DNA of 61,354 bases, the filler included, from Platydemus manokwari (taxonomy: Eukaryota): the NCBI GenBank assembly GCA_037951405.1. It is 5 parts of 5 records of this genome, joined end to end, with 100 filler letters (N's around TTAATTAATTAA, not from the genome) between each part and the next. Parts side by side here need not be neighbours in the genome. Positions count along the whole stretch, not along the records: positions 11,030 to 28,880 come from JBBMOY010722205.1; 4 more parts are not named here. One strand, given 5' to 3'. This document shows positions 11,030 through 28,880 of this stretch, piece by piece (position 1 is the first letter of the stretch; each line of letters opens with the position of its first letter). A program made the position numbers and the translations under genes. The notes beneath the pieces are model-generated. The model saw nothing but the letters and a program-made list of their open reading frames with translations, was not told the DNA's origin and searched no databases.

Positions 11030-12569
11030 TTTTCAAGTTTTCAAATCTCATTAAAAAATCAAAGAACTATCTATCAATAATTATGATGAATAGAATTATT
11101 ATATTTAAACAACATACTTTTTTCTAATTTGAAAATAAAATTTTCCCAAAATTTCTGTTAACCAATTCATTATATTTATAAAATCTTGATTTATGATAAA
11201 ATAAAGATTTAAACACTAAGGAAAACTTTTTACAAACTCTAAATTGTTTTTTAAGAATATTTCCATTAAAAAATATTCTAATTTTTATAAGGCTATAATC
11301 GATCTTTATATATAATGATGATAAAATTAACTTTAAACAGGAATTCTGCATGCCTAAATTAACTTTAAATCGAAAATATGAACAAGAGTTAATGGAAAGA
11401 TTAAATACTGATAAATCTATTCAAGCAAATTATTTAAATAGGTTGGAAAATGCAACTGATTTTCGCTTACACTTCATCTAATAATGAGGTTGAGCCTTGT
11501 AACCAATGTGAGAAGAACTTACCGTAGCTACAGAAATCGATAAAACACTAAATTAAAATGTAGAGGTTATTGTTGTATTATTGAGTTAAAAAGTGTAGGG
11601 ATTTAAATTAAGTACGGAAAAATGAAATTGAATTCTATTCAAATTTTTCACAAGAAATTACTGTTTTATGCACTTAATACTCATTATTATAAAAATAAAT
11701 AATCATTTAATAACTCTCAACCAAATCGGCTTGGATCTAATCAAACCAAACTATAATTAATTCTTAAGATAGATTTCATACTTATCCACCTTCTCTTTCG
11801 TTGTAATCAGACTATCAATTCAAAGAGAACTAATTTGGATCTCCAACATAAGTGTAATCGAAATTGCCAGAAAAACAGTGGCAATACAAATAATTCAAAT
11901 TAAAAATCCCCTGGTTATTTGTTTAATATTCTGCTGTCATTTAAATCCTATTATATAATATTGTAGAATTTTTTCATTGTAATTATATCTTAATTTTATT
12001 TATTTTATTGTGTTTATATTTCCAAAATTAGGACTTCTCCATGCTGGTGTTAATTTACAATAATACTAATCACAGCGAAAATTACTAATACATTCTAGAC
12101 TGTAATATCTTATAATTTTTTAAAATTTTGAGGTTCTTGAAAGTTTTGTGACAATTGTAGGGTACCAGACCCTGCGCCAGATAGAAACAATTATTAATAT
12201 AAAGTTTTTATTTTTATGAAAAAATCCTAAGAATTGAACTGAAAATAGAATTAGTAATAATAAAATACCTAATCAGAAGAATGAAATAGTATCAGAAAAA
12301 TAAATAGTTATATAATTGGAATAAATAAAATACGAAAATAGACGTAAATAATAGACAGAAAAATAAACCGTATAAATATAATTCAAACGTGCTGTGGAAG
12401 TGCCATCACCATTATTATCATATGATTATTATTTTTTATGAGTTATAACTATTTTAATTAATGGTGTGTGCATAATTATGGACCAATATAAAAACTTAGA
12501 ATTTAGATTAATAATAGAATAATTAATTCGATCTAAAATATATAATTGTTATTACAGGTTCCGACTACA

Positions 12570-12830
12570 AATAATCTTTATTATATAAATAAATTTGGAC
12601 TCAAAATGAGTAAATATGTAATTAGTTCATCACCAATTGAAATACAATTAATACAATGACATTAATTTTTTGGCAAATAACCAGATAAGTGATTAATTAT
12701 AATTGCTATTTATCGAGGTTCTATTTTAAATAACTAATTATAAAGGATTTTTCTTATGACCTGGCTCTTAAGAGTCTCCGTAACCGCAAAATTAGCGCTC
12801 ATTTCCTTGATGATTTTCTCAGTTTATTTG
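12570..12830 (+). repeat. Dispersed repeat fragment, homologous to ~39370-39670 (possibly LTR-element derived)
   Basis: Both sites share, in the same order, ACAAATAATCTTTA, TTTTTTGGCAA(A/T)TAACCAGATA, GATTAATTATAATT(G/A)CTATT, GAGGTTCTATTTT and TCTTATG...TAAGAGTC. Boundaries are approximate. Confidence 0.55.
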
Positions 12831-14700
12831 TACTTTTGTTGATGTATGTACAATCTAAAGTTTATAATGTGTAGTCCAAATATGAATAAGAGAAATTATC
12901 TCCAAATATTAATGATGAACAATACGATTTATAAGAATGAAGTATTACTTAGCTTCTTTGAAATTAAAAATTATTGAAATTATTTTTTGGTTGGAGTTTC
13001 TAATTCGAAACGATTGCTTAACAATTTTGTAGTAGTTTGTGGTTTAGTTTCTAATACTTTCTATTTAATATGTTTCGTTATTATTTTAATACTTGTTAAT
13101 CTTGATGATGAAAACTTTAATTGTTGTCTATTTATTAACTTACTAGACTCATATAATTATCTGTTAGTTCTTAGATCCTAGGTGAAATCATCAATTATCG
13201 ACTTTAAACTATTGTTGATTTGAGTCAAAAATTAGATCAACTCACAATTCCATCATAACTAAATCATCGTTTTCATAATTTATCTGCACAGAAATATCGT
13301 ATGAGACCCGAAATCCACACTATATTCACATTTGGTATCACTTATCACACGGCCGTTGATACCAGTTGGATTGGAATTTAAATTCCATATTAGCATATCC
13401 CTCACACAGTTTAAAGTAGCTTCTGGATAATTTGATTTTATATCAATGGTGAAATAATATTTTTGCATCACTATTATAAATAATATTTTCTTTATTCAGA
13501 GAAACTATTTTTTACAAATCCAGATTTTTTAAAATTGCATTGATATTAGTAAAATATATGCAACATTATCTGCCAATAACCACAATGATGTCTTGTTTTC
13601 TTTGCCATTTAGAAACTCGATTTCATGGTGAGCTGGATGTATTGTTTAAGTTAATAAAAGAATAATCAATTGATACAAAAATTATTTCATATCAAATTAA
13701 GCAATTGAACTTCAATTGGCTTACAAATTATTTGATAATCATTTCACAGGCTTTATATTTTTGGAACGAAAAACGAATTCATTTACATATTCAGTATATA
13801 TTTGTAAATTGTTTATTGCTGAAATCATCGAAGCTAGAAGTGTTGTCAGAAACATAAATGTTTCATTAAAAGAAATTCCAATTTCACATCTCTGTTACTG
13901 GGATAAAAATTCTCACAAAATCCAGCTGAAATAAAATATTTAAAATTTCGGACGAAACATATACTGGACAACAAAATAGGCGATTTTTTTTACTGAAAAG
14001 TTTCTGGGGTAACTAATTACCACAATAGTCAGAGGATATAATTTTTAAATGGATATAGATTTCAATTTGGTAAAAGCCAATAAAGTTTCATGCTTTTTTA
14101 TCTAACGTGACGACACGGGATTACAATAATACTTATAAAGTTGTTGAAAAAGCAACATATTCAACTTATAATTACATCAAAGTTAATGTTGACAGTGTTC
14201 TGGATCTAGGAGAAAGCCAATTCAACAAGTCTATTCATTACGGCATCATATTTAAGTAAAACTCTAATATAAAATATATAATATTATAAATAAAACAAGG
14301 AACGTCATTATAATTTAAGTTAAATCACTTTTTATTAACTTATTTAATTCTATAGTTTAGTCTGGTCCATGGGTCGGACACGAACTAGCAAAATTAGTCC
14401 ATACCTTATGTAAAACATCTGTGAACATTCTTAACAATATACAATTTAAAATCATTGTAGAAAATATTTTCGATATCAATTACGAGTTGTTTTTTCGAAA
14501 TAATTAAAGCACATTTACTTCATTTATCGAATTATTAAAATGATAAATAACGATTGTCTCTTACAGTTTGATAAAATTTGAGAATCATTACACTAATTCA
14601 TGAAGAGATAACAATTAATATCCAGCTTATAAAAATATTTTTATGAATAAAGATTATCAAGTATTTTAAAATTTATTTAAATTTAAAAATCAATTTTATT

Positions 14701-17700
14701 ATGATAGCATTGCTGTTGATTTTTCTTCTTGTACAACCACAACCGACATTGCCAACTTGTACTTACAATGAGAAATATGGTGAGCAATTTCGATTAAACT
14801 TTATTTCGATGACTAATGCACTACGTCAGCTCATGACGTCATCCATATTTAACTAAATATATACCATATTCCAGACTTGTATCATCATCATTCATTATTT
14901 TTCCATGTTATGTTGATTATGAATTAAGAAAATAATTAAAATTTCTTGTGCTATTAAATGTCAATAATATTATATCGATATCAACTATTTTCGATCAGGT
15001 CGAGCAGTGACCAGTGTTCAGGAAATCTCACTGTGTTACAATGCCGATTGTTCCACCAGCACAAAAATGTTGAAGAATAATGACAATTATCAACGTTGCC
15101 AAATCAAAGGCCAAGCAACAATATCGAGAATGAAAATCTTAATCTATCGTAAATCAATGGTGAAAGGTACAATACCCATGTTTTGTGTGGACTCCAGTGG
15201 TTTTTGGAAAAAAATCGATAAAAGTATTAAGTGTGACACGACAACTAGTTTGCGTTTTACATCTTATGCTTCTTTGGGCGAATATGATGTTTATGTTGTG
15301 GCTTGTGACGATCAAGAACAAGAATTTCCAGATCAAGGTTATTGTTATTTTTATAAATAAGTTTTTACTCAATTAATTTCCGAATAGGTGTGAGTATTTT
15401 AGGAAAATTTATTTATATTATAAAATATGAAGGCTTAAACTAAGAAAAGAGGTCCTTTGATCTACTTTAGTAATAATTTATTTCCGCGTTTGAGTTAATT
15501 TTGTATATAATTACAATGTTTGATTTATTCGTAGAATTCAGTTAATATCTCACTTTTTAGGATGTCTAGTAGGGACAAAACATAGTTTTTAAACCAAGCT
15601 CATATTTTAAAATCCTAAAACTTGAGATTATCCCTCAATTCGCTTTATAATGTTAAAAGGGGGTATTAGCTAGTTTTCAATAAATTACAATTCGATTTAG
15701 TTTGATTCATTTTTCAAATAATAAAAGTTTTAGGAAATTTTAGAAGCTCTAGTGTATTTAATTTTTTGTATCAAACAACTAAAATTCTTCTTAAGTGCTT
15801 AAATGAAAAATTCAAAATGTTTTAAAGAATTTAATTAAATAAACTATATAAATTTTTGCAATATACTCAACAATTACAAAAAATTTATTTTAGAACATCT
15901 TTTCTTAACTTTAGCCAATATAAATGATCAATTTAATTTGTTTGAATATTTTTATTAAATATACTTCTGGGGTTTGAACTTTTTAGATTCATTTTCAATC
16001 TCTTTAGAAACTGTTAAGATAAAATTTTCGCAACCTTTTATGCAGAAACTAAAAATTTCTTTCTTCTTTTTGATAAACACTTTAACTTCTTAAAATAGAA
16101 AACAAATGATTTATCTTATCACATTTAATATGGTTTTATATAATTAAAAATTGACAGACAATCCTCGTGAACAAATTCTTGGTTTCGATGCTGAAAACGA
16201 TCAAGTACCGCCATTTATAGGTTTGATGTATCCAACTGTACAAGTGTTTTGTGTTTCTAATTGTTTGGAAAACAAAGTATATTGGATGACTGTGGTAGGC
16301 GCTAAATATGTTGTTATAAGAAATGAAACCAGTGCACTCGTTGTAAAAACAGCCAAAATTACCGACCCGCAAGATATTGGTTTAGAAATCCACGCAGTTT
16401 GTGGAAAATCTCAAAGTACTGGAAAGAATTTTAAATTTTATATAGCAGGTGTGTGATAAGAATAATAATTACTTTAATAAACGATTGTTCTTTCACAGAT
16501 AAAATGACAGCTGTACTTCAGTCATATGCTGATAGTAAGGATCGTAATCCCGTAAATAATTACGATGCTGGAGAATCAATGGGTTGCATTGTCAATGGTT
16601 CTAATTCAGTTCGACCAAATGCTACTGGACCAACACCGTCTCAGAATATTGCTCTGACAAATCTTGATAATAAAGGAAATATTTATGAAAAAATAACGTT
16701 AGTTTAGCCTTCTTAAACACTCTTAAAACACAAATTCAAAGCTATCATACACTAGATATTGTTAGTGGGAGCTATATCTTTTTAACCAGTGTTCTTCAAA
16801 AGCTTGGAGGCGCTAAAAATTTCATTTTCGTAAGTGACTTATATTAAGCCAAAATATTGATCGAATTTTAAAGATCTGGAATTAGTACTGAGACCAGCTA
16901 TCACCGAAATAGAGCCAAGATTTGATGTTTTATGCGAGAATATGCAAAATCGTTGTTATTATTAAATATATTTTAATTTTTCTGTGTTAAAATTTTTTTT
17001 ATTAAAAGAATTTACTTTTAAGGGTCGCGAAGAAATTTGGACTCGTACAGTGAGTCACATCACAAAAAGTGTGTAGACCACTGGTTTAAACAACTAGAAT
17101 TATCAAAATTTTTAATTAAGACTTCTAAAATACAGATTATTGAAATGAATTTAAATATTTCCAAAAGAGGCATACATGATGGTCTTCCTGATCAGAATTA
17201 TAAAGGTTAACGAGACGAATGTAAATATGTTTTAATTAAAAAGATTTTAAAATTCATTTAGATATTAATTTTGAAATAAATCAAATTTTTCAAATGATTG
17301 ATTAGTTTTTAAAATATTTCGCACAGATAATACAAACGACACTGTGAGCCACTTTAATTTTGTAAAACACGTATTGAAAACGAACTGAACCGTCACGACA
17401 CCAATTTATATTTAAATACGATTATTTAAACAAATGAATATAAGACTTGATTATAAAATCTTTGAAATGTTAAAATCCTCAAAAATTCTCAAAATATAGC
17501 TATATGAATTGGTTGCTTGTTCAAAATCAATGAGCGAACTATGAAATGGAATATTCTATTCAATATAGATATGTACTAAGAACTACGAATCAATATTTGA
17601 TTAACATTTATATTTTCAAAGAATTAGATATTCGAGATGATAATTTTGCAGCCGTTTTTGATAAAATCCATTCAACAGTAATATTATTTTAAAAATTTGA

Positions 17701-20700
17701 GTTTACAATGATGATATAATAGTTTCATTTTCCATATACCTTTTGCTTTAAGTACATCATTTTATATTTTTATTTGGTGGTTCAACCAATTTTGACTTGT
17801 GCGCCATACTTTTGAGATGCCTTTATAAAACAAAAATAAATAATTTCTTATTTCATACTTTTGGGATTGATATCATTTTACCAAAACAACTAGTAACGGA
17901 ACATCAACAACCTTAACGATACCGGACAATTTGACGATACGATCTGGTGGTGTGGGTGTATTGTGTTATTTCGGTAGTTATGAATCCAATAAGACTGATG
18001 ATTATTATGAACTTTTGGTGAAACCTATATCTATTTCAGGTTTTGAACTATTTGTTTTAATACATTTCGATAAATGATTTTCTTATGTAGCACGATTCCG
18101 TACGAAATTAAAATATGTAGACCGTCCGATTTATCAAGAACCTTACGATATCGGGGTTGGAGAACAAATTGAATGTGATAAAGCTCATTATTTTGCTATG
18201 ACGAATTTGCCAATCAGCACAATACCGTTGTATATTTTGTATTCCACAAATGGCACGTATCCAGCATCATCCCTTTTAAATTATGAAAACCGTGACTGGG
18301 ACAATGCTACAAGCGGGCAAATGACTTTTAAGCGGAAGGATCCAAATAAAAAAATGTTTGCATTTTGCCTTCTTAATACTGAAATAACCACACCAGTTCA
18401 AATATTTTCGGGAGGTATTTTGTGATTATTTGGTATTAAATGGTATTTATGATTATCAATTCATTTTAGATAGACCTGCTGTTAGAATTCATTACCATCA
18501 TCCGAAATGGAAAACCGATTATCATTTGATGGGGTTTATTTTTATTTGTGATGGTGAAAATATCAATGATATATCTTTAACTTGTACGGACTGTCCACCA
18601 GATGTCAGTATGATCGTTATTGATGAAGGTACGACAGGAAAACGATTAGAAATTCCAAAATCTCTCACAAGAAATATTAATATTCGATATAGATGCAATG
18701 GATATTCATCTAAATACGAATCCGTTTTTAAAGAGCTCCCATTAAATATTATTGGTTTGTTGATGTTTATTGTTTATTGAAAAAATTGTAAACATTCTGT
18801 TTATTACTTTTTGGAATTTGTTGTCACAATTCACGTCTGGAAATAACGATTAATTTGATTTCTGAAATAAAATAATCTCGTACTAGATCGACTTATAAAT
18901 AGTATTGCGACGGATTTAATGACATGTAACCAAAATATGGTTAAGCGACAAGAGGTAATGGATCTGCATCTACTGATTGACTAAATATGAAATGGTGGAG
19001 TCAATGTCATATCTGATACTGATGAGAAACAGGCTTGGGATAAATTAATACTTCGGATAGAATTTATTATCAGTGCAACATATCAGATCTCAATTCGGCA
19101 TTCTCCTTTTGAAATTTTGTTTCGGGCGGCGAATTAGTATGCATGGGTTACGACTAAATAAACCAAGCCCGTACGACTAGATCATCAAAGAAACGGAAGA
19201 TCAGCTAAAACCACAAACTTAAAAACGAGATTGTAGAATTATCGAGATTGGTGAAGAAGTTTTAGTGAAGAAAGAACCACACAGGATAAAGAAGAACAAA
19301 GATCGTTATGAAGGTCTTCACAGAATTTTGAAAATTTTAAGCCCACATCAAGTGCTTCTTGATTTGCAGGGACAGCCAAAATCTCGAAGAATTGAGTGGG
19401 TAAAATAAATTTCAAAAATAACGGGAAAGGGAAGTTAGATAAATCTTAGATATTTAATTTGTTTACATATTCGATGCAAACAAACGATGTTTTCACTAAT
19501 ACTAAAAAAGTCCAGCGGTCGATTACCTATTGAATTTGTCTAACAACAGATCATGTAATTCATTCGCGAAACATTTTGATGAGTTTTTAATTCGAAAATG
19601 AAATTGTTACTTCCATAAATTTCTATATCACTAGTTTTACATCCAGAATAAAATTAATTATGCCAAGATTTATGGGAACAGAAAGTGTAATATTAATGTT
19701 TGTCACGGATTTCATCATCTACCCATTATGTAGATTTTATTTATGATTTATGCTTATATTTTCGTATGATTAAAATTTTTCCAGTGTCCGAAATAACGGA
19801 CTTATATGGGAATTATTCATTCTTTCTTTACGGAAAAGATTATTTACAATGCCGATCGTTTTTCACTGTAGTAGAAAACGGTAAATCTGTCAAGAAGTCT
19901 ATTCCTTTACCTCCCCAAATGCAAGTCGACGGTAGCGGGGCTGTTAATGAATATGGGAATATGTCTGAATTATTAATCATGCAAGATAATCTACCTGTTA
20001 TTGATTATTATCGTATAGTAGGTTTTCAAGCATGTTGCCCACCATTTGTAGCTAATAAATATTCATGTATGGGTCAATGGAGAACATTATTCGTTACAAG
20101 TAATTATATTATTTTCTGTTAAAAAGTTATGGGTATTTATTGATAAAAATTCTATGCTTAATACACAATTACATAAAAAGCTATTTTAATTAGGTAATCT
20201 TGATTGAGAGACTTGAAAATTAGACAATGCAGTTAGAATAATTATAAACTAAATATAAATATTAACGCAACAGTTATAATTAATTGAACTAGAATAATTC
20301 TTATAAATTATTAAATTATTATCTTCGATCTAACCAATCAAATTTAAATATATTCAAATATTGATTTTAACGAAGTGATATTAAATGAAATGACTAATAG
20401 TCACTGATAAATGGTGAATAGATTTTTGATAATTTCTTTACATTCAAATAGATTGCTTTTCATAATAGTAACAATATCATAAAGTTATTTATTATTATTA
20501 TTAAAATATTTTAAAAATATATTAAAGTATTAGTGAGATAAAAATAAAAACTTTTAATTGTGAATATATTAAAAATTATTAATTAAGGATTATATTATGT
20601 TAAATATAATGTGGACTTAACCGAAGTTTATCCTGGAAACGTGCTGCGATGTTATATATGCATGAACTTCACACATGAAGCATCTAATCAAAAATGCGAT

Positions 20701-20922
20701 GGCGATCATGTTATACAATCAAAGATAGCAATTCATGTCATAAATCCAGATGGTTCTGTCAATGCAACTGGATTTCAAGATGAGGTTCGAGCACCCGTGG
20801 AGGGATTAAAACCGGATCAAAGAGGATACTATAAAATAACTGATTACGATGTTAAGGTAGCATGTTTAGTTAGAGGTGTAGGCAACTACACGAAGATTTT
20901 TATGAAATGTAATAATATTTAA
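14701..20922 (+). CDS. Secreted multi-domain glycoprotein with seven tandem Cys-containing Ig-like modules, ~770 aa, 9 exons (family not recognised)
   Basis: Exons 14701-14779, 14999-15337, 16158-16448, 16499-16697, 17894-18039, 18091-18414, 18470-18754, 19785-20099 and 20588-20922. All junctions are GT-AG and frame-compatible (2313 nt = 770 aa + stop). Signal peptide MIALLLIFLLVQPQPTLP. Phase-1 introns separate ~95-115 aa modules. About 13 N-x-S/T sequons. No TM segment seen. Confidence 0.8.
16787..17083 (+). mobile_element. hAT (Buster/Charlie-like) deletion derivative in intron 4 of the secreted-protein gene
   Basis: Ends CAGTGTTCTTCAAA ... GTGTAGACCACTG (CAGTG...CACTG TIR), with imperfect 8-bp flanks TTTTTAAC/GTTTAAAC and a subterminal GGGTCGCG. 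The interior translates to a decayed hAT C-terminus (YIKPKY*S...DLELVLRPAITEIEPRFDVLCENMQ). Confidence 0.75.
19021..19437 (+). mobile_element. Gypsy LTR-retrotransposon integrase C-terminal remnant plus polypurine tract, in intron 7
   Basis: Translates to AWDKLILRIEFIISATYQISIRHSPFEILF and EIGEEVLVK...DRYEGLHRILKILSPHQVLL...RRIEWVK* (GPY/F-type module), followed by the purine run GGGAAAGGGGAAG. Confidence 0.7.
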
Positions 20923-20952
20923 TTTTTATTGCATTTATTGATTACCATTATC

Positions 20953-20963
20953 ATTATTATTAC

Positions 20964-21030
<67 letters not shown>
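20953..21030. repeat. (ATT)n microsatellite between the convergent 3' ends of two genes
   Basis: About 25 near-perfect ATT units. Confidence 0.95.
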
Positions 21031-21186
21031 TACGAAAACAAGATTTTAAATAATTCGTGAATGTTTGAAATATGTCGATTTGTAAATATAAAGAATAAAT
21101 AGTAAAAATATGCTTTTCGTTACAAGGAAATATAAAATAAAACACGTTAGGGATAAGTTGTAGGATAAATTACAAAAATATAGAAA

Positions 21187-23052
21187 TCATTTGTATATAC
21201 AATAATTTGCTTCTTCTGGAATTGCAATTGGTTTAGCGGGATTAATTTTAGAATGTAAAGACAAGTGATTGAGTTCTTCATTAGCATCAATGTATAATGA
21301 TGGACTAGGGGGTGAGTAATGTCTTTTATTGAAGATGTCATTATCTTTTGCTGTCGAATCCATATTGAATTTTCTGTTTTCTACTGCATATCCTATGAGT
21401 TGTCTTGATTCCAATGGATTATCCTGATTGACGTGATTTGACTCTCGTGACTTTGCAATTGCTGGACTTTTATAAATTAAATATAAAAATTCAATGAATT
21501 CAGCAAACACAGCAGCAGTTAAGCCAATACAGATTGATGTTAAGCCGCCAATGCGAGATAGTAATGTGTTTGAATCCAGAACTAATTTTTCAGTTTTTAT
21601 ATGAATGTCAAAATTTTTTCTCATTAAACTAATATAAGTGAATGTGTTCTCATCAATGTTATTGAAACTGGACGATTGATTGAATCGATTGTTTCTTATC
21701 TGCTCTCTTAGTTCTCTCGAAATGTTCAGAGATTGTTTAAGAATGCTTTTAATTCTTTCAACATTTTCTTTCGTTCTATTATCCCTGTAAGCAAAATAAG
21801 ATCGATATAGATTTTCGAGACTTTTTAATTTTATTTCATTAGCGGTCCATCGAGTTATAGACATCGTTGTGTCATAAATGGTAAATTGACAAGGAAGGAA
21901 ACATTGTGTATTTTCGATTCGTTGTCGTATCTCAACAAATCTTTCCTTGATATCACTAACGCAATCCAATCTGTTTAATATGAGACTTGGTTCATCTGTG
22001 GAAATTATATTAATGCAATACGGTACGGATGAATTTGATGGAAATGGCCGAGGGATATTGCTTAGCATACAACCACATTTCTCAATGATTTCCATTTGAA
22101 TTCTAGATGAGACACATTGAGTGAAAACATATTTAAATCGATTGTGTAAATCACGGATTCGTTTTTGTTTATTTCTACACGGATTTTTTGATGTACTCAA
22201 TCGCATCCATTTGGTGGGAGAATAAATCAAAGAATTCATTTTGGCAGGATGCATATTGATTCCTGAATTTTCTATATCTGGATATGTTTGAGGTTCATGA
22301 ATTGTCACTTTCAAACCCTCTCCTCGTTGGAGGATATCAAATAGAAAACTATTCGATAATTCTGGAATTTTATCACTCGACGTCAATTGAACAAGTAATA
22401 TCAGACCAATCACTTCAGTTGTATTGTTCTCTTCACCTTCAATTGTAAAACAATTAAAATATTCCTGATGAGAAAATAATTTAATACTAAATTTCTCTTT
22501 AGTCAGATCACATTTTTCGGCGATGACTATATCATTTTTATAAAGAAGAATACAATAACGAATCATGTCTTTCGAATGACCAAGTTTTATCGTATCGTTT
22601 AAAGCCAAGTTCATGTAGTAAGTGCTAAACAAATCATACAGTCTTAAAGTTGATAGATTTTCTAAACCAGGAATGTCGAATGACTTTAAAGACATTATCG
22701 TTAGATTGTCTTGTAATTCAGATGGAGACATAATTTCATGTCTCAGCCAGTAATCATTAGCAGCTAGAGAAAACGGATTTTGTCCACATAATGTTATTGC
22801 TGGAAATGGGCTTGGATAATCAAGTATTGTAGAAGTATGCCAAGCGGTTGTGTATTGGAGATAGTCTTGAATAAGAAATACCATAGTTACAATCAATATA
22901 CATGTCATCAGTAACACAAATCCCGACCACAGTATCTTTTCAAATTTCGTTTTGGCAGAATGAATTTTTGAAATACCTCTTATTGATGATATTTGACAAA
23001 ATATTTTGATTTTTGAAAATTTGACAACATTTTCCGGTGAAACTTTCTTCAT
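21187..23052 (-). CDS. DEG/ENaC (amiloride-sensitive sodium channel family) subunit, 621 aa, single coding exon
   Basis: Pre-TM1 SSIRG, TM1 KILWSGFVLL..., FPAITLC, YFNCFT, GLKVTIHEP, a Cys-rich thumb (KCGC...YC...CFLPC), and TM2 LLSRIGGLTSICIGLTAAVFAEFIEF. Confidence 0.93.
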   Translation of the reverse strand: MKKVSPENVVKFSKIKIFCQISSIRGISKIHSAKTKFEKILWSGFVLLMTCILIVTMVFLIQDYLQYTTAWHTSTILDYPSPFPAITLCGQNPFSLAANDYWLRHEIMSPSELQDNLTIMSLKSFDIPGLENLSTLRLYDLFSTYYMNLALNDTIKLGHSKDMIRYCILLYKNDIVIAEKCDLTKEKFSIKLFSHQEYFNCFTIEGEENNTTEVIGLILLVQLTSSDKIPELSNSFLFDILQRGEGLKVTIHEPQTYPDIENSGINMHPAKMNSLIYSPTKWMRLSTSKNPCRNKQKRIRDLHNRFKYVFTQCVSSRIQMEIIEKCGCMLSNIPRPFPSNSSVPYCINIISTDEPSLILNRLDCVSDIKERFVEIRQRIENTQCFLPCQFTIYDTTMSITRWTANEIKLKSLENLYRSYFAYRDNRTKENVERIKSILKQSLNISRELREQIRNNRFNQSSSFNNIDENTFTYISLMRKNFDIHIKTEKLVLDSNTLLSRIGGLTSICIGLTAAVFAEFIEFLYLIYKSPAIAKSRESNHVNQDNPLESRQLIGYAVENRKFNMDSTAKDNDIFNKRHYSPPSPSLYIDANEELNHLSLHSKINPAKPIAIPEEANYCIYK

Positions 23053-23490
23053 AACAAATAAAAGATAATGAATTTCAGTGTAAAATCATTATAAAATAAA
23101 AAAATTTTAACCAAGAATTTATCGAATTAATTGGGCATGTTTGGGGATTCTCATTGGGAAATTTCGGTAGCAAATGAAATTGAATTTCTATTTATCGATA
23201 TTAATAATTGAGATAATAGAAAAATATATTTGTAACAGTTATGTCAGTCTTGTGAAAAATATATTAACTAAATAAATGACATTTACAGTGACTGATCGAC
23301 TTGACAATTCTATTTCTATTTCAATCATTAGTTTGTAATATAAATACTAATGCACCATTTTATTTATAATGGTGAAATTGTGCTCTTCATGGCTCCAAAT
23401 AATCATTTTATTATAGGTTTTTCCTCAATTATAACCCTGGGGAATTTGCATATCTTCTTGAAATAAAAATAAAAATTAATACTAATAGTG

Positions 23491-23547
<57 letters not shown>
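23491..23547. repeat. (AAT)n microsatellite
   Basis: About 19 AAT units upstream of the DEG/ENaC start. Confidence 0.95.
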
Positions 23548-23550
<3 letters not shown>

Positions 23551-24010
23551 TCATTCAATACTGCATTTATTATCAATTATCATCGAACCACATAATATTC
23601 CATTGCTTAAAAATTTAAAATTCCGCAACAATATGGACATCTACTCGTTTTGTTTAAATGCATAAATAAAAACAGCAACTCCCAATAATTTCCTCAATAA
23701 TTTCAACAAAATTTTCGTAATTTCACATGAATTCAATTTTAATGACTTCCTATTTCTTTCCATTTAAAGGCTAAATTTCACAACCGAATTATAATCGTGA
23801 TACCAGTCAAAGATTTTAAATAACACCCCGATATAATTAGTTGAATTAATCACGGAATAATTTTCCGATATTTGGCTCACAAATGCAGTAAAGAAGAAAT
23901 GTAAACATTGAGTAATGGTCAGATTTTTATATATTAGATATTGAAGACTAATTTTATATTTCTATTTCTCGTCATAGCAACTAGTTGTAAAATGTAAAGA
24001 GATTTAATAT

Positions 24011-24568
24011 TGTTGAGTAGATCACAAATCTATCAAAATGGTCACAAGAACCAAGAAAAAACCCTAACAAGAGTCGATACACACAGACCACATAAACTCA
24101 CGTCCCGTTAACCAATCAAAATTGTTATAATATTAATCCATATTTAGAAGCTAAGAATCGACAGGCACATACCTACAAATGGCAGCAAGGTCAATTAACC
24201 GTCAATGGCACGAAAGATGTAAGGAACACTTCAAGTAGATTAATCCACGACTAAATTCAGCAAATTGAAAACAAAGATTCTTGACATCAAGCAGACATAG
24301 GACTTTAAAAGAAGTTGTGTTTTATGGATATCTGCCAGTCTTTTTTGGTCGGTAACTTGAGTTCTTAGCATATCTTTGTGTGAATTTTAGTAATAAGTCT
24401 TTTTGATTATTTTCCATTCTGTTTTTTTACTTTCTGGTGCCGAACCCGTCTTGAATGATTCACTTTGTGAATAGTGGAAAGATTTTCTGTTGTTGCTGTT
24501 GAGAATTTGATTGTATTATTTTAGTTAATACAATTTTCAGATCTAAATTGTTGACTGATAACCCAACA
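24011..24568 (+). mobile_element. Probable solo LTR (copy 1 of a dispersed family)
   Basis: TGTTGAG...CCCAACA termini. The interior is collinear with 40067-40445 and ~34230-34709 (shared CAAGAACCAAG, GGCAGC, TGCCAGT, TTTTTGATTA, TTTGTGAAT). 4-bp flanks ATAT/ATTT. Confidence 0.62.
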
Positions 24569-27500
24569 ATTTCAAAGCAGTGACATATAATGTATTAATT
24601 GAAAAATAAATCAAAAGTATAACTCAATTGATAAAAAATTTAAAGTGCATCTAATATGAGGAAATTCTTTATTTCCAAATGCTTAGTTAAGCCATCAAAT
24701 AGTTCAAACTATCTTCTGATTCACATGGAATCGATATTATTAATAAATTTTAAAATAATTGTCCAACTCTTTTTTAACAAAAAAGATACGAAAATTGCAT
24801 TTCTTTTTGAGAGAACTAATTTTCGGATATCGCTAAGAATATGCTTTTTATCCTTATTAGATTGAATGATAATGTTACTTTCTACAATTTTTTTAACGTT
24901 GGTTTGATATATTTTTATGTATTGTAAGCTACTAATCAATTGCATCGTCTTAGAAATTTTGGATTCTACTAATTTTCTTCGGTGTCAAATTCGAAAAAAT
25001 AATGAACATACTTTCACAAAGCATTTCAACCGAATGCATTGAAAAATATCGCTAAGTTTAAGTAGATATTTCCAAATTTTTTTATTAATCAAATCTACCC
25101 ATAGATCAGTTTTCATTATTGTTTTTATTAAAGAATTAAAACCTATAATTCACTCTCAAACATTTTACTAAATTATTATTAGGGCACACGACTTTTAAAA
25201 TTACTTTTTGGTTTTATAAATATATGTATTAACATAAACTATGTTCTTTGTAAACCATTTCTTATTAAATAAAACTAAAAAAAATTCAATAAAATTTAAT
25301 TTTACCTTTAAAACGATAACTTTCATTAAATATTACTTTCTAATTTTAAAACGAATTTATTCTTATATTTGCAAAATTTTTTGAAATTTTTAAACAAATT
25401 TTCAATAATCCCTTTGTAAATCCGTAGCGAGACTTTACTATGAAGCTCTTGAATCAAAATTTATCGAGTAAAAATTTAAAAGTAAATTCCTCCTACATTT
25501 TTATTTATTTTACATTCTCATTGTTTATTTTAATTAAATCATTGGATTATCAGTGTTTTAGATTAGTATTTGGTCTGCCTTTGAAACTTAAAATATCATA
25601 ATTCTTAAATTTTAGACGAGTAGAATATATAGCAACCAATCAAAAGTTACCTCGATCAAAACCCTGAAATAAGTACTTGAAGAGAGTACACAGAAACTAT
25701 CGTTACAAGTTCTGTAGGCAATGAATTAGAGATCTTAAAATTTACGGTTTATGATTGAATACTTACTTTTTATAGGTGCAAACATGCACAGAAGAACAAA
25801 CATCCTAATACTTTATGGAAGTGTGGTATCAAAACCTTGTATTAAAAGCTGAAAAACAAAGAACAAGTGTAAATTAAACACATGGAGTTTGAAAGAGCTG
25901 ATTCTCAACGAAAATTATTAATCTTTCTAGTCAGTAACTTTGAGAATATCAGGATTTAAAATTTTTTAATTTTAATTCCTAAATATTTAAATAAAATATA
26001 AATATATTAAAAACCATAATTAGTTTGAATACTTACAGTTTAATATGCTTTTCGTGTTGACTTTCTTAAATTCGTTTCCAATGCTTATTTAGTAAAATAG
26101 AATCAGTTAACCCGTAACATCTACGTTTATCTTTCGAATACTGAACTCTTCTTTACGTAATTTGATTTGTTCTTTGGGTATTTGTATAAAGATGGTGTAA
26201 TTTTATTAATTGTGCTTTATAATAATTAATATTTTTTGTTAATCACGATTTGGGAAATAAGGTAACACAATAATACTATTGGCGACATCAGGAAAATCAA
26301 AATTAAGCATAAGCAAATCGAAACCCAATATTAGAAATTACAATTAGAGTTGTATATATATACATGAGAGAGTGTATATGATGTTAATAAAATACATTCT
26401 GCTGGAAATATCATCATAAAATTAGAATTAAAAATCTACAATTTCAATGCTAATTTCAAAAATATTTACAAATCTTATAACCACATTTTTAAAATTTTCA
26501 AAGTCATTTTAGTCATAGTTTTCAAGATTAATTCGTGACTTCACAAATATAAGATTAGTTTATTTCAAAATTAAAAATAATATATTTGATAATCTAAACT
26601 GAGCTCAATGGAGTCTCCAGTGAGATGACCATTTGTAGAATTAATGTGATAAGGTAGTTTCAAAACTTAATAAAATACCTACAAATTATAATGAAATTAC
26701 TTAAAATAGTTCAGAATTTATTATATTCTTTGAACTAAATCGTTGTATATAACATATTATATAGTTCACCAATCAAAAAGAAATTTCTTTTGTAGTATTT
26801 TTGCATAAGAGTTAATTTTCTTATTTACGATGTAAAACAATGTATGACATTTCATTCTAATTTTCTAATTAACTTATAGCGAGCAAATATTGTCGATTTT
26901 AACATTCCATACACTTGCAAGCATAATATTTATTGTTTCTATAATAAAAATAAGCCATTGTTCGATTGTGTTTGTTGTAAACATAATAGAATATATCGTT
27001 TATAAACTTTTAATTAATTGGGATACTTAATACTAAAGATAAAAAGCTAAGATTAATCCTTCTTAACTGTTCAGTCATGCTAAAATTAATGGATATACTT
27101 CATTATACATTTCGTTGTTAGTTTTTATCTGTTTCAAAATGTTTCTGACAATCAATATAATCTCAGAAAATAAGATTTTATAAAATATTCAAAATCGAGA
27201 TACTCATTTTGAAATAAATGAATTATAAAACAATCTGATAAGCATAAAATATCATGAATTGCTTGTCAATGTGATTACCGCACGAAATCATTCTATTTCA
27301 TTATAAATTTGTCAAGTTTTTGACAGTTTCTAAAAGATGGCATTTTCAAATGAATTCATTAAATGTTATTGATTAAGAAAGAATATATTAAATAACTAAT
27401 TAAATAATATATATTATTTAGAAAATAAAATCACCAATAAAATTAATTAATCATTAATGTTAACCATTTCAAACAGAAATTATGAAGGTTATTCAAATAT

Positions 27501-28880
27501 ATTTTCCTTGTTGATAAATATCTTAGGAACTGTACGCTCAATTTTATTGTCCCATCTATACAAAAGAATAAATAGAATTGATAAATATAAAATAATACAT
27601 TTATATAAATAGTGAATAATCAGAGTCAGGACAGTAAGGAACGTGTAACTCTGTTCTCCAATAAAACTTAAATTCACACATTTAAAGTTACAGAATAAAT
27701 GTTGAAAGTTATTGGTAGTACATAAATGAGTATTTGCCATCACAACCCTTGGACCCGCTTTCTTGCTATAATACTCTTTACTGGCGCTCCGCTTAAAAGA
27801 TCATTTATAAACTACTCAGATAATGAAAAATCTTTCTCACGAGAACAAAACGTTTACCCAATTTTAAAATTTCTCTGGGGGAATGTGCGAATTCCATCAT
27901 TTTTATTTATCTTCTGTCATCAATAGGACATAATGAATTCTTTTCCTATTCATAATAATGTATTTTATGTTTACTACTAGCAAAACTTTTGAAGAACAAT
28001 TACGACGCACACTTTGACAAGATATTTTACTGTGTGATAATTTCAGCACTCTAAGAAGTCCATTATCGCAAACAGTATATTGTATAACAATTTTTAAGAA
28101 GTTTATGCTCATTCTGTTCTGAAGAATTTTATTTACGAAACTTTATGCAATCAATGAGTAATTTTATTATTTGTTTTATTAAATTTAGACCCACGGCTAG
28201 TCTTATCATTGGGGTCCGTTAAAATATATAAGTTCAACTTCAAGCTCCACACTATCATTTTTTTCTTGGGAGGCTTACCCGAGCACCTAAGCGGTACGCC
28301 CTTTACTGTTTCTTGACTACTATTCTGCTTCCACAATAACGAACATCGCGTTGTAGTGTTATAAAATCATTGTGTTTAAATTATTAATTTTTGTCGATTA
28401 ATACATTTTATTTTGTTATATTTTTGCCTTTATTTATTATAGTCCTGTCTAAATTTGTAAACATTATAAAATTAAATTGATCACAAAATATACTTGAATT
28501 TAACATATAAACTGCTATTACACCTTCAGTAAATATTTTTGAACGAAAGTAAGTTATTTTTAATATCAAAGTTTTCAAGTCTTTTACATTATTAACAATT
28601 TTAATATTTTGCGTCTTCTAACGTATTTCCTAATGTATTTTTATTTATTTGTTTTGGTTTACTAATATAATTTTCATTAATATTTACTATCTTCATTTTA
28701 ATTAATTAATTTTAATTATTTATTTAATTTTTGATTTTAATTATTTATTAATTCTCCTATCGAATAAATTTTTCCTCTTATTATTTAAATTTCAGCACTT
28801 TTTCCTAAAAATACAACGATAAGACTTATATTTTAAGTTTGTATTTATATCGATTCCAACAACTACCATACAACCATTAA

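Follow-up and report, generated by a model that had tools for sequence, protein, structure and literature searches.

Strings of immunoglobulin superfamily (IgSF) domains of the I-set and C2-set kinds, such as those in hemolin, in the NCAM-type ectodomains and in the LILR/GPVI-type receptors, are made of domains of about 100 residues encoded by phase 1-1 exons. The presence of one phase 1-1 exon per domain is typical of the IgSF and is not defining for it. IgSF domains are Greek-key beta-sandwiches of 7–9 strands, with an intradomain Cys pair on strands B and F some 50–75 residues apart, a core Trp about 10–15 residues past the first Cys and a D-x-G-x-Y-x-C motif ahead of the second. FN3 domains normally lack a buried Cys pair, and the Ly6/uPAR three-finger domain carries 8–10 Cys forming 4–5 disulfides in about 70–90 residues. 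Here we describe a nine-exon gene at positions 14701–20922, + strand, of a window of 61,354 nucleotides (nt) from the genome assembly GCA_037951405.1 of Platydemus manokwari; the window is the whole stretch of DNA analysed, five parts joined end to end, and the gene lies in the piece covering 11030–28880. The predicted product is similar to IgSF strings in having domains of about 100 residues on phase 1-1 exons, a Cys pair 49–71 residues apart (in six of the seven modules), a signal peptide and N-glycosylation sequons. Unlike the IgSF strings, it gave no Ig profile match, its modules can not be aligned with one another, no membrane anchor is present, and the residues around the Ig core are confined to single modules (Trp to module 2, Y-x-C to module 5). 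With a probability of roughly 0.58, we consider this locus to be a genuine gene for a secreted, N-glycosylated and disulfide-stabilised protein of about 770 residues, of which modules 2–7 are most likely Ig-like sandwiches.

The gene model was rebuilt base by base from the sequence. All eight introns begin with GT and end with AG, the intron phases in order are 1, 1, 1, 2, 1, 1, 1 and 1, and the spliced frame of 2313 nt consists of 770 codons and a single terminal stop, in agreement with the preliminary description of this locus, in which short open reading frames and two extra exons were joined into one frame of 770 amino acids. The short sequence motifs quoted in that description were all found in the exon translations, and the spliced product contains 13 N-x-S/T sequons, as against about 13 reported there, together with 27 Cys. 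An in-frame stop is located 19 codons upstream of the start codon of exon 1. The exons are as follows, where the sister copy is a second copy of the gene in the same assembly.

14701–14779, + strand: exon 1, containing the start codon; it encodes a hydrophobic stretch resembling a signal peptide and closes with a conserved Cys..N..Y-G; donor GTGAGC, phase 1
14999–15337, + strand: exon 2 (module 1), 113 codons, 6 Cys, phase 1-1
16158–16448, + strand: exon 3 (module 2), 97 codons, phase 1-1; Cys31, Cys35 and Cys81
16499–16697, + strand: exon 4 (first part of module 3), donor GTTAGT, phase 2; two sequons common to the sister copy
17894–18039, + strand: exon 5 (second part of module 3), 146 nt, with the second framework Cys
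18091–18414, + strand: exon 6 (module 4), 108 codons, phase 1-1; Cys28 and Cys92
18470–18754, + strand: exon 7 (module 5), 95 codons, phase 1-1, 4 Cys
19785–20099, + strand: exon 8 (module 6), 105 codons, phase 1-1, 4 Cys including a CC pair
20588–20922, + strand: exon 9 (module 7 and the stop codon), 5 Cys, one of them four residues from the C-terminus

The seven modules are 94–115 residues in length. The earlier proposal that phase-1 introns separate modules of about 100 residues held for seven introns; the eighth, of phase 2, lies inside module 3, which it divides between exons 4 and 5. Each of the other six modules is encoded by a single phase 1-1 exon, and the sister copy has this layout of one domain per exon as well. 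For exon 9, a second acceptor at 20627, also in phase, was ruled out and the start was taken as 20588, because the conservation with the sister copy begins at exon residue 2 as counted from 20588.

The sister copy is located on the minus strand of contig G000:C1239986, with exons 2–9 collinear and with the matches bounded by the exon borders. It has the same nine exons in the same order and with identical intron phases. Four exon lengths are equal in both copies (146, 324, 285 and 315 nt), and three short introns measure 50, 51 and 55 nt in the window copy versus 50, 47 and 52 nt in the sister. The exon 1 equivalent of the sister has a hydrophobic start and ends in the same Cys..N..Y-G before the donor GT, in the same phase. 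The sister has an unbroken frame of 765 codons, which contains 27 Cys and stops at the same place as that of the window copy. The two products share 289 of 726 aligned residues (about 40% identity; 28–56% for individual exons), and all 27 Cys are conserved between them; 5 of the 13 sequons stand at positions common to both. The identity is graded along the protein, from 28–30% in the N-terminal modules through 38–45% in the middle modules to 56% in the C-terminal module. Module 1 keeps all of its 6 Cys at 30% identity. At the nucleotide level, alignment was confined to parts of exons 6–7 and exon 9 plus one intronic repeat, and the proportion of differences between the copies was 0.72 at synonymous sites (pS; saturated) versus 0.42 at nonsynonymous sites (pN). 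In the absence of selection on one protein, two copies of such age would have lost the nine frames, the eight phases and the 27 Cys. The G+C content (GC) is 35.4% in exons versus 25% in introns, the same contrast being observed in the sister copy, and is about 25% outside genes in the piece 11030–28880. The reading of the nine exons as a genuine single protein-coding gene is thus well supported.

A Cys framework was found in modules 2–7. The first Cys of each is located 21–31 residues past the exon start, and its framework partner 15–24 residues before the exon end, giving spacings of 50, 61, 64, 49, 61 and 71 residues, which are conserved in the sister copy. The framework is far more regular than in shuffled modules, with a product of per-module probabilities of 3e-7 for windows that were chosen after inspection of the data. 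The paired Cys noted previously for the modules were therefore confirmed for modules 2–7, and module 1 was found to be outside the pattern. The 6 Cys of module 1 (7 with the Cys of exon 1) are arranged unlike those of modules 2–7; this module is among the two least conserved ones and gave no Pfam match. The numbers of Cys in modules 1–7 are 6, 3, 2, 2, 4, 4 and 5.

Profile, database and structure analyses were performed exon by exon, and folds were predicted for exon 6 and exon 9 only, both from two-row alignments. For exon 6, the model (one of five) was an eight-strand beta-sandwich with a predicted local distance difference test score (pLDDT) of 65.9 and a predicted template-modelling score (pTM) of 0.61. 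In this model, Cys28 ends the strand 25–28 and Cys92 lies within the strand 87–94, as expected for the B and F positions of an Ig domain, where they may form a disulfide. The 150 matches listed as structural neighbours are all sandwiches of Ig, FN3, ZP-C, TIG or PKD type, and include GPVI, LILRB1/2, FcRL5, CD4 D3-D4 and Kit D1 of the IgSF. A Foldseek search with the same model gave no match below E 0.03, and the weak rows were nearly all Ig or FN3 domains. The fold similarity of the model was equal for FN3 and Ig. Module 4 is probably an Ig-like sandwich, for which the model, short of proof, leaves Ig and FN3 indistinguishable. The structure prediction and Foldseek search proposed in the preliminary description were thus successful in part, yielding a middling beta-sandwich for exon 6 and failing for exon 9.

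As to secretion, a hydrophobic core was recognized by eye in exon 1 of both copies. The candidate cleavage sites, also read by eye, are aligned, with a cut between I-L-A and Cys in the sister and between L-P-T and Cys in the window copy; the site of the sister agrees with the −3/−1 rule. When the translations of exons 2–9 were read by eye, no long hydrophobic segment, hydrophobic C-terminal tail or retention signal was seen. A DEG/ENaC channel gene is convergent with the module gene, their stop codons being 265 nt apart, and there is therefore no room for a further exon. The product would thus be a soluble secreted glycoprotein, in line with the signal peptide and the absence of a transmembrane segment claimed previously: a secretory-type start is found in exon 1, and neither a membrane anchor nor a glycosylphosphatidylinositol tail is visible. 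Because no mucin-like Ser/Thr/Pro-rich stretch was seen by eye in the exon translations and no RGD, KGD or LDV motif is present in the protein, a gel-forming mucus role is not indicated. The conserved near-C-terminal Cys is located four residues from the end in the window copy and one residue from the end in the sister. Together with the odd total of 27, this makes a free or intermolecular Cys possible, and suggests that one Cys may be left unpaired for a disulfide linking the protein to a partner or another chain.

In the mechanism that we propose, the signal peptide would be cleaved and the mature chain would probably begin at the conserved Cys of exon 1. The seven modules would then form a flexible string of beads, in which modules 2–7 are most likely Ig-like (Greek-key) beta-sandwiches and module 1, with its 7 Cys including that of exon 1, may adopt another fold. 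As judged from these sequence features, the protein may have an extracellular binding or adhesion function. Since the N-terminal modules diverge fastest (28–30% identity) and the C-terminal module slowest (56%), the variable N-terminal end could be the one that meets the ligand, and the conserved C-terminal end could dock to a partner or oligomerise, possibly through the terminal Cys.

The distribution of the gene was examined in the assembly, which amounts to 911 Mb in 1.99 million contigs, and in protein databases. Single-sequence and profile searches of the genome gave the two copies only, on different contigs; the large paralogue cluster for which a search had been proposed was accordingly rejected. 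An HMMER search with the exon 9 profile against 1.84 billion protein representatives gave one true relative and one spurious repeat protein. The relative, P0001 (UniParc UPI00060B2E20; E 3e-18), is 45–46% identical to both copies over exon 9 residues 2–76, and the three Cys of the matched stretch are conserved. P0001 is a chimeric gene model, in which residues 11–85 match exon 9 and residues 89–135 correspond to an exon of DAD1, a subunit of oligosaccharyltransferase. A transmembrane continuation hinted at by the C-terminal half of P0001 was ruled out, as that half is the exon of DAD1, joined on through an error in the gene model. Nothing was found in a word search with exon 9, none of the 377 pattern matches in a scan of JGI metagenomes was confirmed, the exact-sequence look-up of P0001 and of the neighbouring channel protein returned no record, and a literature word search on planarian secreted IgSF proteins found no such family named. 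Given that the genome holds two copies and that the 1.84 billion representatives yielded a single partial relative, the lineage-specific character ascribed to the protein at the outset was borne out.

The protein may also evolve fast, as had been proposed. Module 7 is 46% identical to the outside relative, versus 69% for the channel gene and its best outside hit, a comparison which assumes that both outside matches are orthologues from one species. On this basis, the module protein seems to evolve faster than the neighbouring channel. As a separate observation on P0001, a homologue of the module protein may adjoin DAD1 in the species of that record; in the present assembly, DAD1 is located on a separate contig, C1157394 (L012 1384–1788).

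We then compared the protein with other sandwich and Cys-rich families. It is unlike FN3 and cytokine-receptor-type proteins in that no fn3 profile match was obtained and a conserved Cys pair is present. It is unlike the ZP-C domain (e.g. betaglycan ZP-C) in the absence of a Pfam zona pellucida match; in addition, no ZP-N/ZP-C pairing, C-terminal propeptide or transmembrane segment was seen in the translations, as judged by eye against the usual features of ZP proteins, in which the module is followed by a C-terminal processing site and an anchor. Module 7 shares with Ly6/uPAR proteins an L-x-C-Y-x-C start and a C-terminal C-N. The two copies and P0001 have all kept the L-x-C-Y-x-C...C pattern at exon 9 residues 19–36 (window 20650–20700), and the last residues of the protein are C-N-N-I. 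Unlike the three-finger domain with its 8–10 Cys, however, module 7 has 5 Cys in 110 residues, and no Pfam match to UPAR_LY6 or QVR was obtained at E up to 10. The ESM Atlas result for exon 9 was below recognition level, and the Atlas row that names the Ly6-type family QVR for this exon had a score of 0.78, below lead level. The small number of Cys and the lack of a profile match speak against a Ly6/uPAR three-finger identity of module 7.

Several results weigh against the reading of this locus as a gene for a secreted string of Ig-like modules. All eight exon junctions were read from genomic sequence alone. No Ig, FN3 or other Pfam profile was above threshold for the eight exons searched in either copy (hmmscan, E up to 10); the sub-threshold match of exon 3 to Receptor_2B4 (E 0.14, 12.8 bits vs a cut-off of 21) was not repeated in the sister. 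Sequence-profile searches of the PDB with modules 2, 4 and 5 gave no Ig match of note and nothing usable. A Trp of the C-strand type is present and conserved in module 2 only (W42, 11 residues past the first Cys), and the full D-x-G-x-Y-x-C motif is found in none of the seven modules, as had been noted when the core Trp and this motif were described as mostly absent. The AlphaFold model of exon 9 was poor (pLDDT 41) and was discarded; strands were the only secondary structure that it showed, a point in favour of a sandwich. Similarity between modules was not detectable by hhalign profile comparison (probabilities ≤2%); sequence homology between the modules was therefore rejected, and the recurrent aromatic...G...Cys pattern can not be taken, as it was at first, for a sign of homology. 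The signal-like peptide was read by eye and lacks a basic n-region. Finally, the assembly holds several animals, as indicated by four COX1 genes, and we infer rather than observe that the contig belongs to the flatworm. In all, the IgSF-like character claimed initially found no support by sequence, no Ig profile being matched in either copy, and found weak support in the exon 6 sandwich with its Cys at the B and F positions. The Ig-like label for the protein as a whole is weakly supported.

How far these results favour other explanations depends on which part of the reading they touch. The missing Ig and FN3 profile matches, the lack of inter-module similarity and the uneven Cys counts would all be accounted for if the gene were real and its product secreted, with modules that are not Ig-like and instead represent unrelated or novel small disulfide-rich domains alike in size and exon phase only. 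Module 1 might then have a 7-Cys fold of its own and module 7 a Ly6/uPAR-like start, to which the L-x-C-Y-x-C of exon 9 in the three known sequences and the weak QVR row of the Atlas would correspond. We regard this explanation as unlikely, although it deserves serious attention. In six modules the exon borders and the Cys stand in a regular relation, the Cys pair of the only usable model, a sandwich, occupies the strands expected for B and F, and all the 150 matches listed for it are Ig-like sandwiches with no mixture of folds; as to exon 9, the Cys number, the profile searches and the sub-lead Atlas score all disagree with a Ly6-type domain. The reading of modules 2–7 as Ig-like sandwiches is thus preferred. 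A narrower proposal within it, that the protein belongs to an unrecognised flatworm-restricted family of soluble recognition factors with seven sandwich domains that have diverged too far to be recognized by sequence (for immunity, self/non-self recognition or recognition of prey or pathogens), acting as disulfide-linked oligomers or linked to a carrier, is rather improbable. If true, the family would be a flatworm counterpart, by function and not by descent, of the secreted IgSF recognition proteins of other invertebrates.

Two further explanations concern the gene itself. The second copy could be the orthologue from a related, co-assembled animal, the gene then being single-copy in each genome, and the presence of at least four full-length COX1 genes (64–85% protein identity), which indicates that more than one animal was sequenced, would agree with such an origin. 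However, of the four full-length COX1 genes a single one has a flatworm-type code, both contigs share an intronic repeat family, and the channel gene has no copy in the assembly above 53% identity, compared with 69% in an outside species, whereas a co-assembled relative should have given a closer one; we therefore hold this origin of the sister copy to be very unlikely. That the exons do not make up one expressed gene at all, being part of a decaying or untranscribed copy or of at least two adjacent genes whose 770-codon frame is artificial, would fit with junctions known from the genome only, with the lack of a recorded product and with a chimeric gene model as the sole outside relative. Nevertheless, copies past synonymous saturation have kept nine exons, their phases, 27 Cys and a stop-free frame, and a start codon with a signal-like peptide is found in exon 1 only, the other exons beginning in phase 1 or 2 and being unable to function independently. 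The chance that the nine exons are anything other than a single gene is accordingly slight.

If the preferred reading of a secreted string of Ig-like modules is right, it adds to flatworm biology a lineage-restricted secreted family that escapes profile-based annotation, and gives an example of Ig-like modular architecture that has outlasted sequence similarity and is retained in the exon structure and the Cys framework. That the protein represents a family restricted to one lineage and built on an Ig-like modular plan is partly supported: its exon architecture, the size of its domains, its Cys framework and one predicted fold are like those of secreted multi-domain IgSF or FN3 proteins, but it fails the IgSF profile and core-motif tests. 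It may be of use in the annotation of flatworm secretomes and matrisomes, and is a concrete candidate for expression and knock-down work. The finding has no bearing on a long-standing open question, and the surprise is limited, as such genomes probably hold many lineage-specific secreted proteins.

The remaining features in and around the module gene are listed below.

15432–15916, intron 2: interspersed repeat, outside the coding unit, with copies 72–82% identical on L005, L020, L032 and L033
about 20950–21030: (ATT)n run between the stop codon and AATAAA, in the presumed 3' untranslated region
21094–21099, + strand: candidate polyadenylation signal AATAAA, 172 nt past the stop codon, as read from the sequence
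21187–23052, − strand: intronless gene of 621 codons for a DEG/ENaC channel (PF00858, E 4e-48)

A second long microsatellite, (ATT)n/(AAT)n, was found at 23403–23576, upstream of the channel gene. The region of the locus richest in GC is 19030–19530 (35%). Intron 7 contains at 19240–19415 a short open frame that by eye resembles the C-terminal part of a retrotransposon integrase or pol protein, and is unconfirmed as Pfam gave no match. Of the copies of the intron-2 repeat, that on L005 falls in intron 1 of the sister gene, that on L020 has a channel paralogue beside it, and the others are on L032 and L033. Through this repeat, the contig of the module gene is connected with further nuclear contigs of this genome.

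About 40 matches to the channel gene are present in the genome. Many are uninterrupted frames of 500–660 codons, the closest is 53% identical, and together they have the appearance of a large intronless channel gene family. Outside this genome, the best match of the channel is P0003 (UniParc UPI000604D7FC), at 69% identity. An ESM Atlas search with the channel protein led to clusters of Nematoda and Arthropoda and was uninformative as to the phylum. A tandem or segmental duplication of the module gene along with the channel gene was rejected, as the sister copy is flanked by no channel gene within the 1.3 kb of available sequence.

With respect to the composition of the assembly, the full-length COX1 genes are located on contigs C1514745, C1389203, C1344449 and C1440324 (L015–L018). 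Given four such genes, the sample is mixed and the assembly combines several animals, whether prey, hosts or contaminants, so that the assignment of any of its contigs to an organism calls for care. In the COX1 of L018, AAA stands where Asn is conserved and ATA where Ile is conserved, as in the flatworm/echinoderm mitochondrial code; the usage of ATA and AAA in the other three is that of the ordinary invertebrate code. Many COX1 pieces that are degenerate and contain stops (L023–L029 and L031–L034) were also detected on long contigs of 25–30% GC, for example at G000:C1120441:9111-9974 and C545552:8946-9537. All of them are closest to L018, and mitochondrial DNA copied into the nucleus is their probable origin. 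On L032 and L033, the COX1 piece adjoins a copy of the intron-2 repeat of the window. Based on the code of L018, on the COX1 pieces being nearest to L018 and on the intron-2 repeat beside two of these pieces, we assign the window with moderate confidence to a rhabditophoran flatworm; a planarian-like triclad would be no more than a guess based on genome size and base composition. The neighbourhood on L032 and L033 also raises the possibility that a mitochondrial fragment may have spread in this genome together with a repeat.

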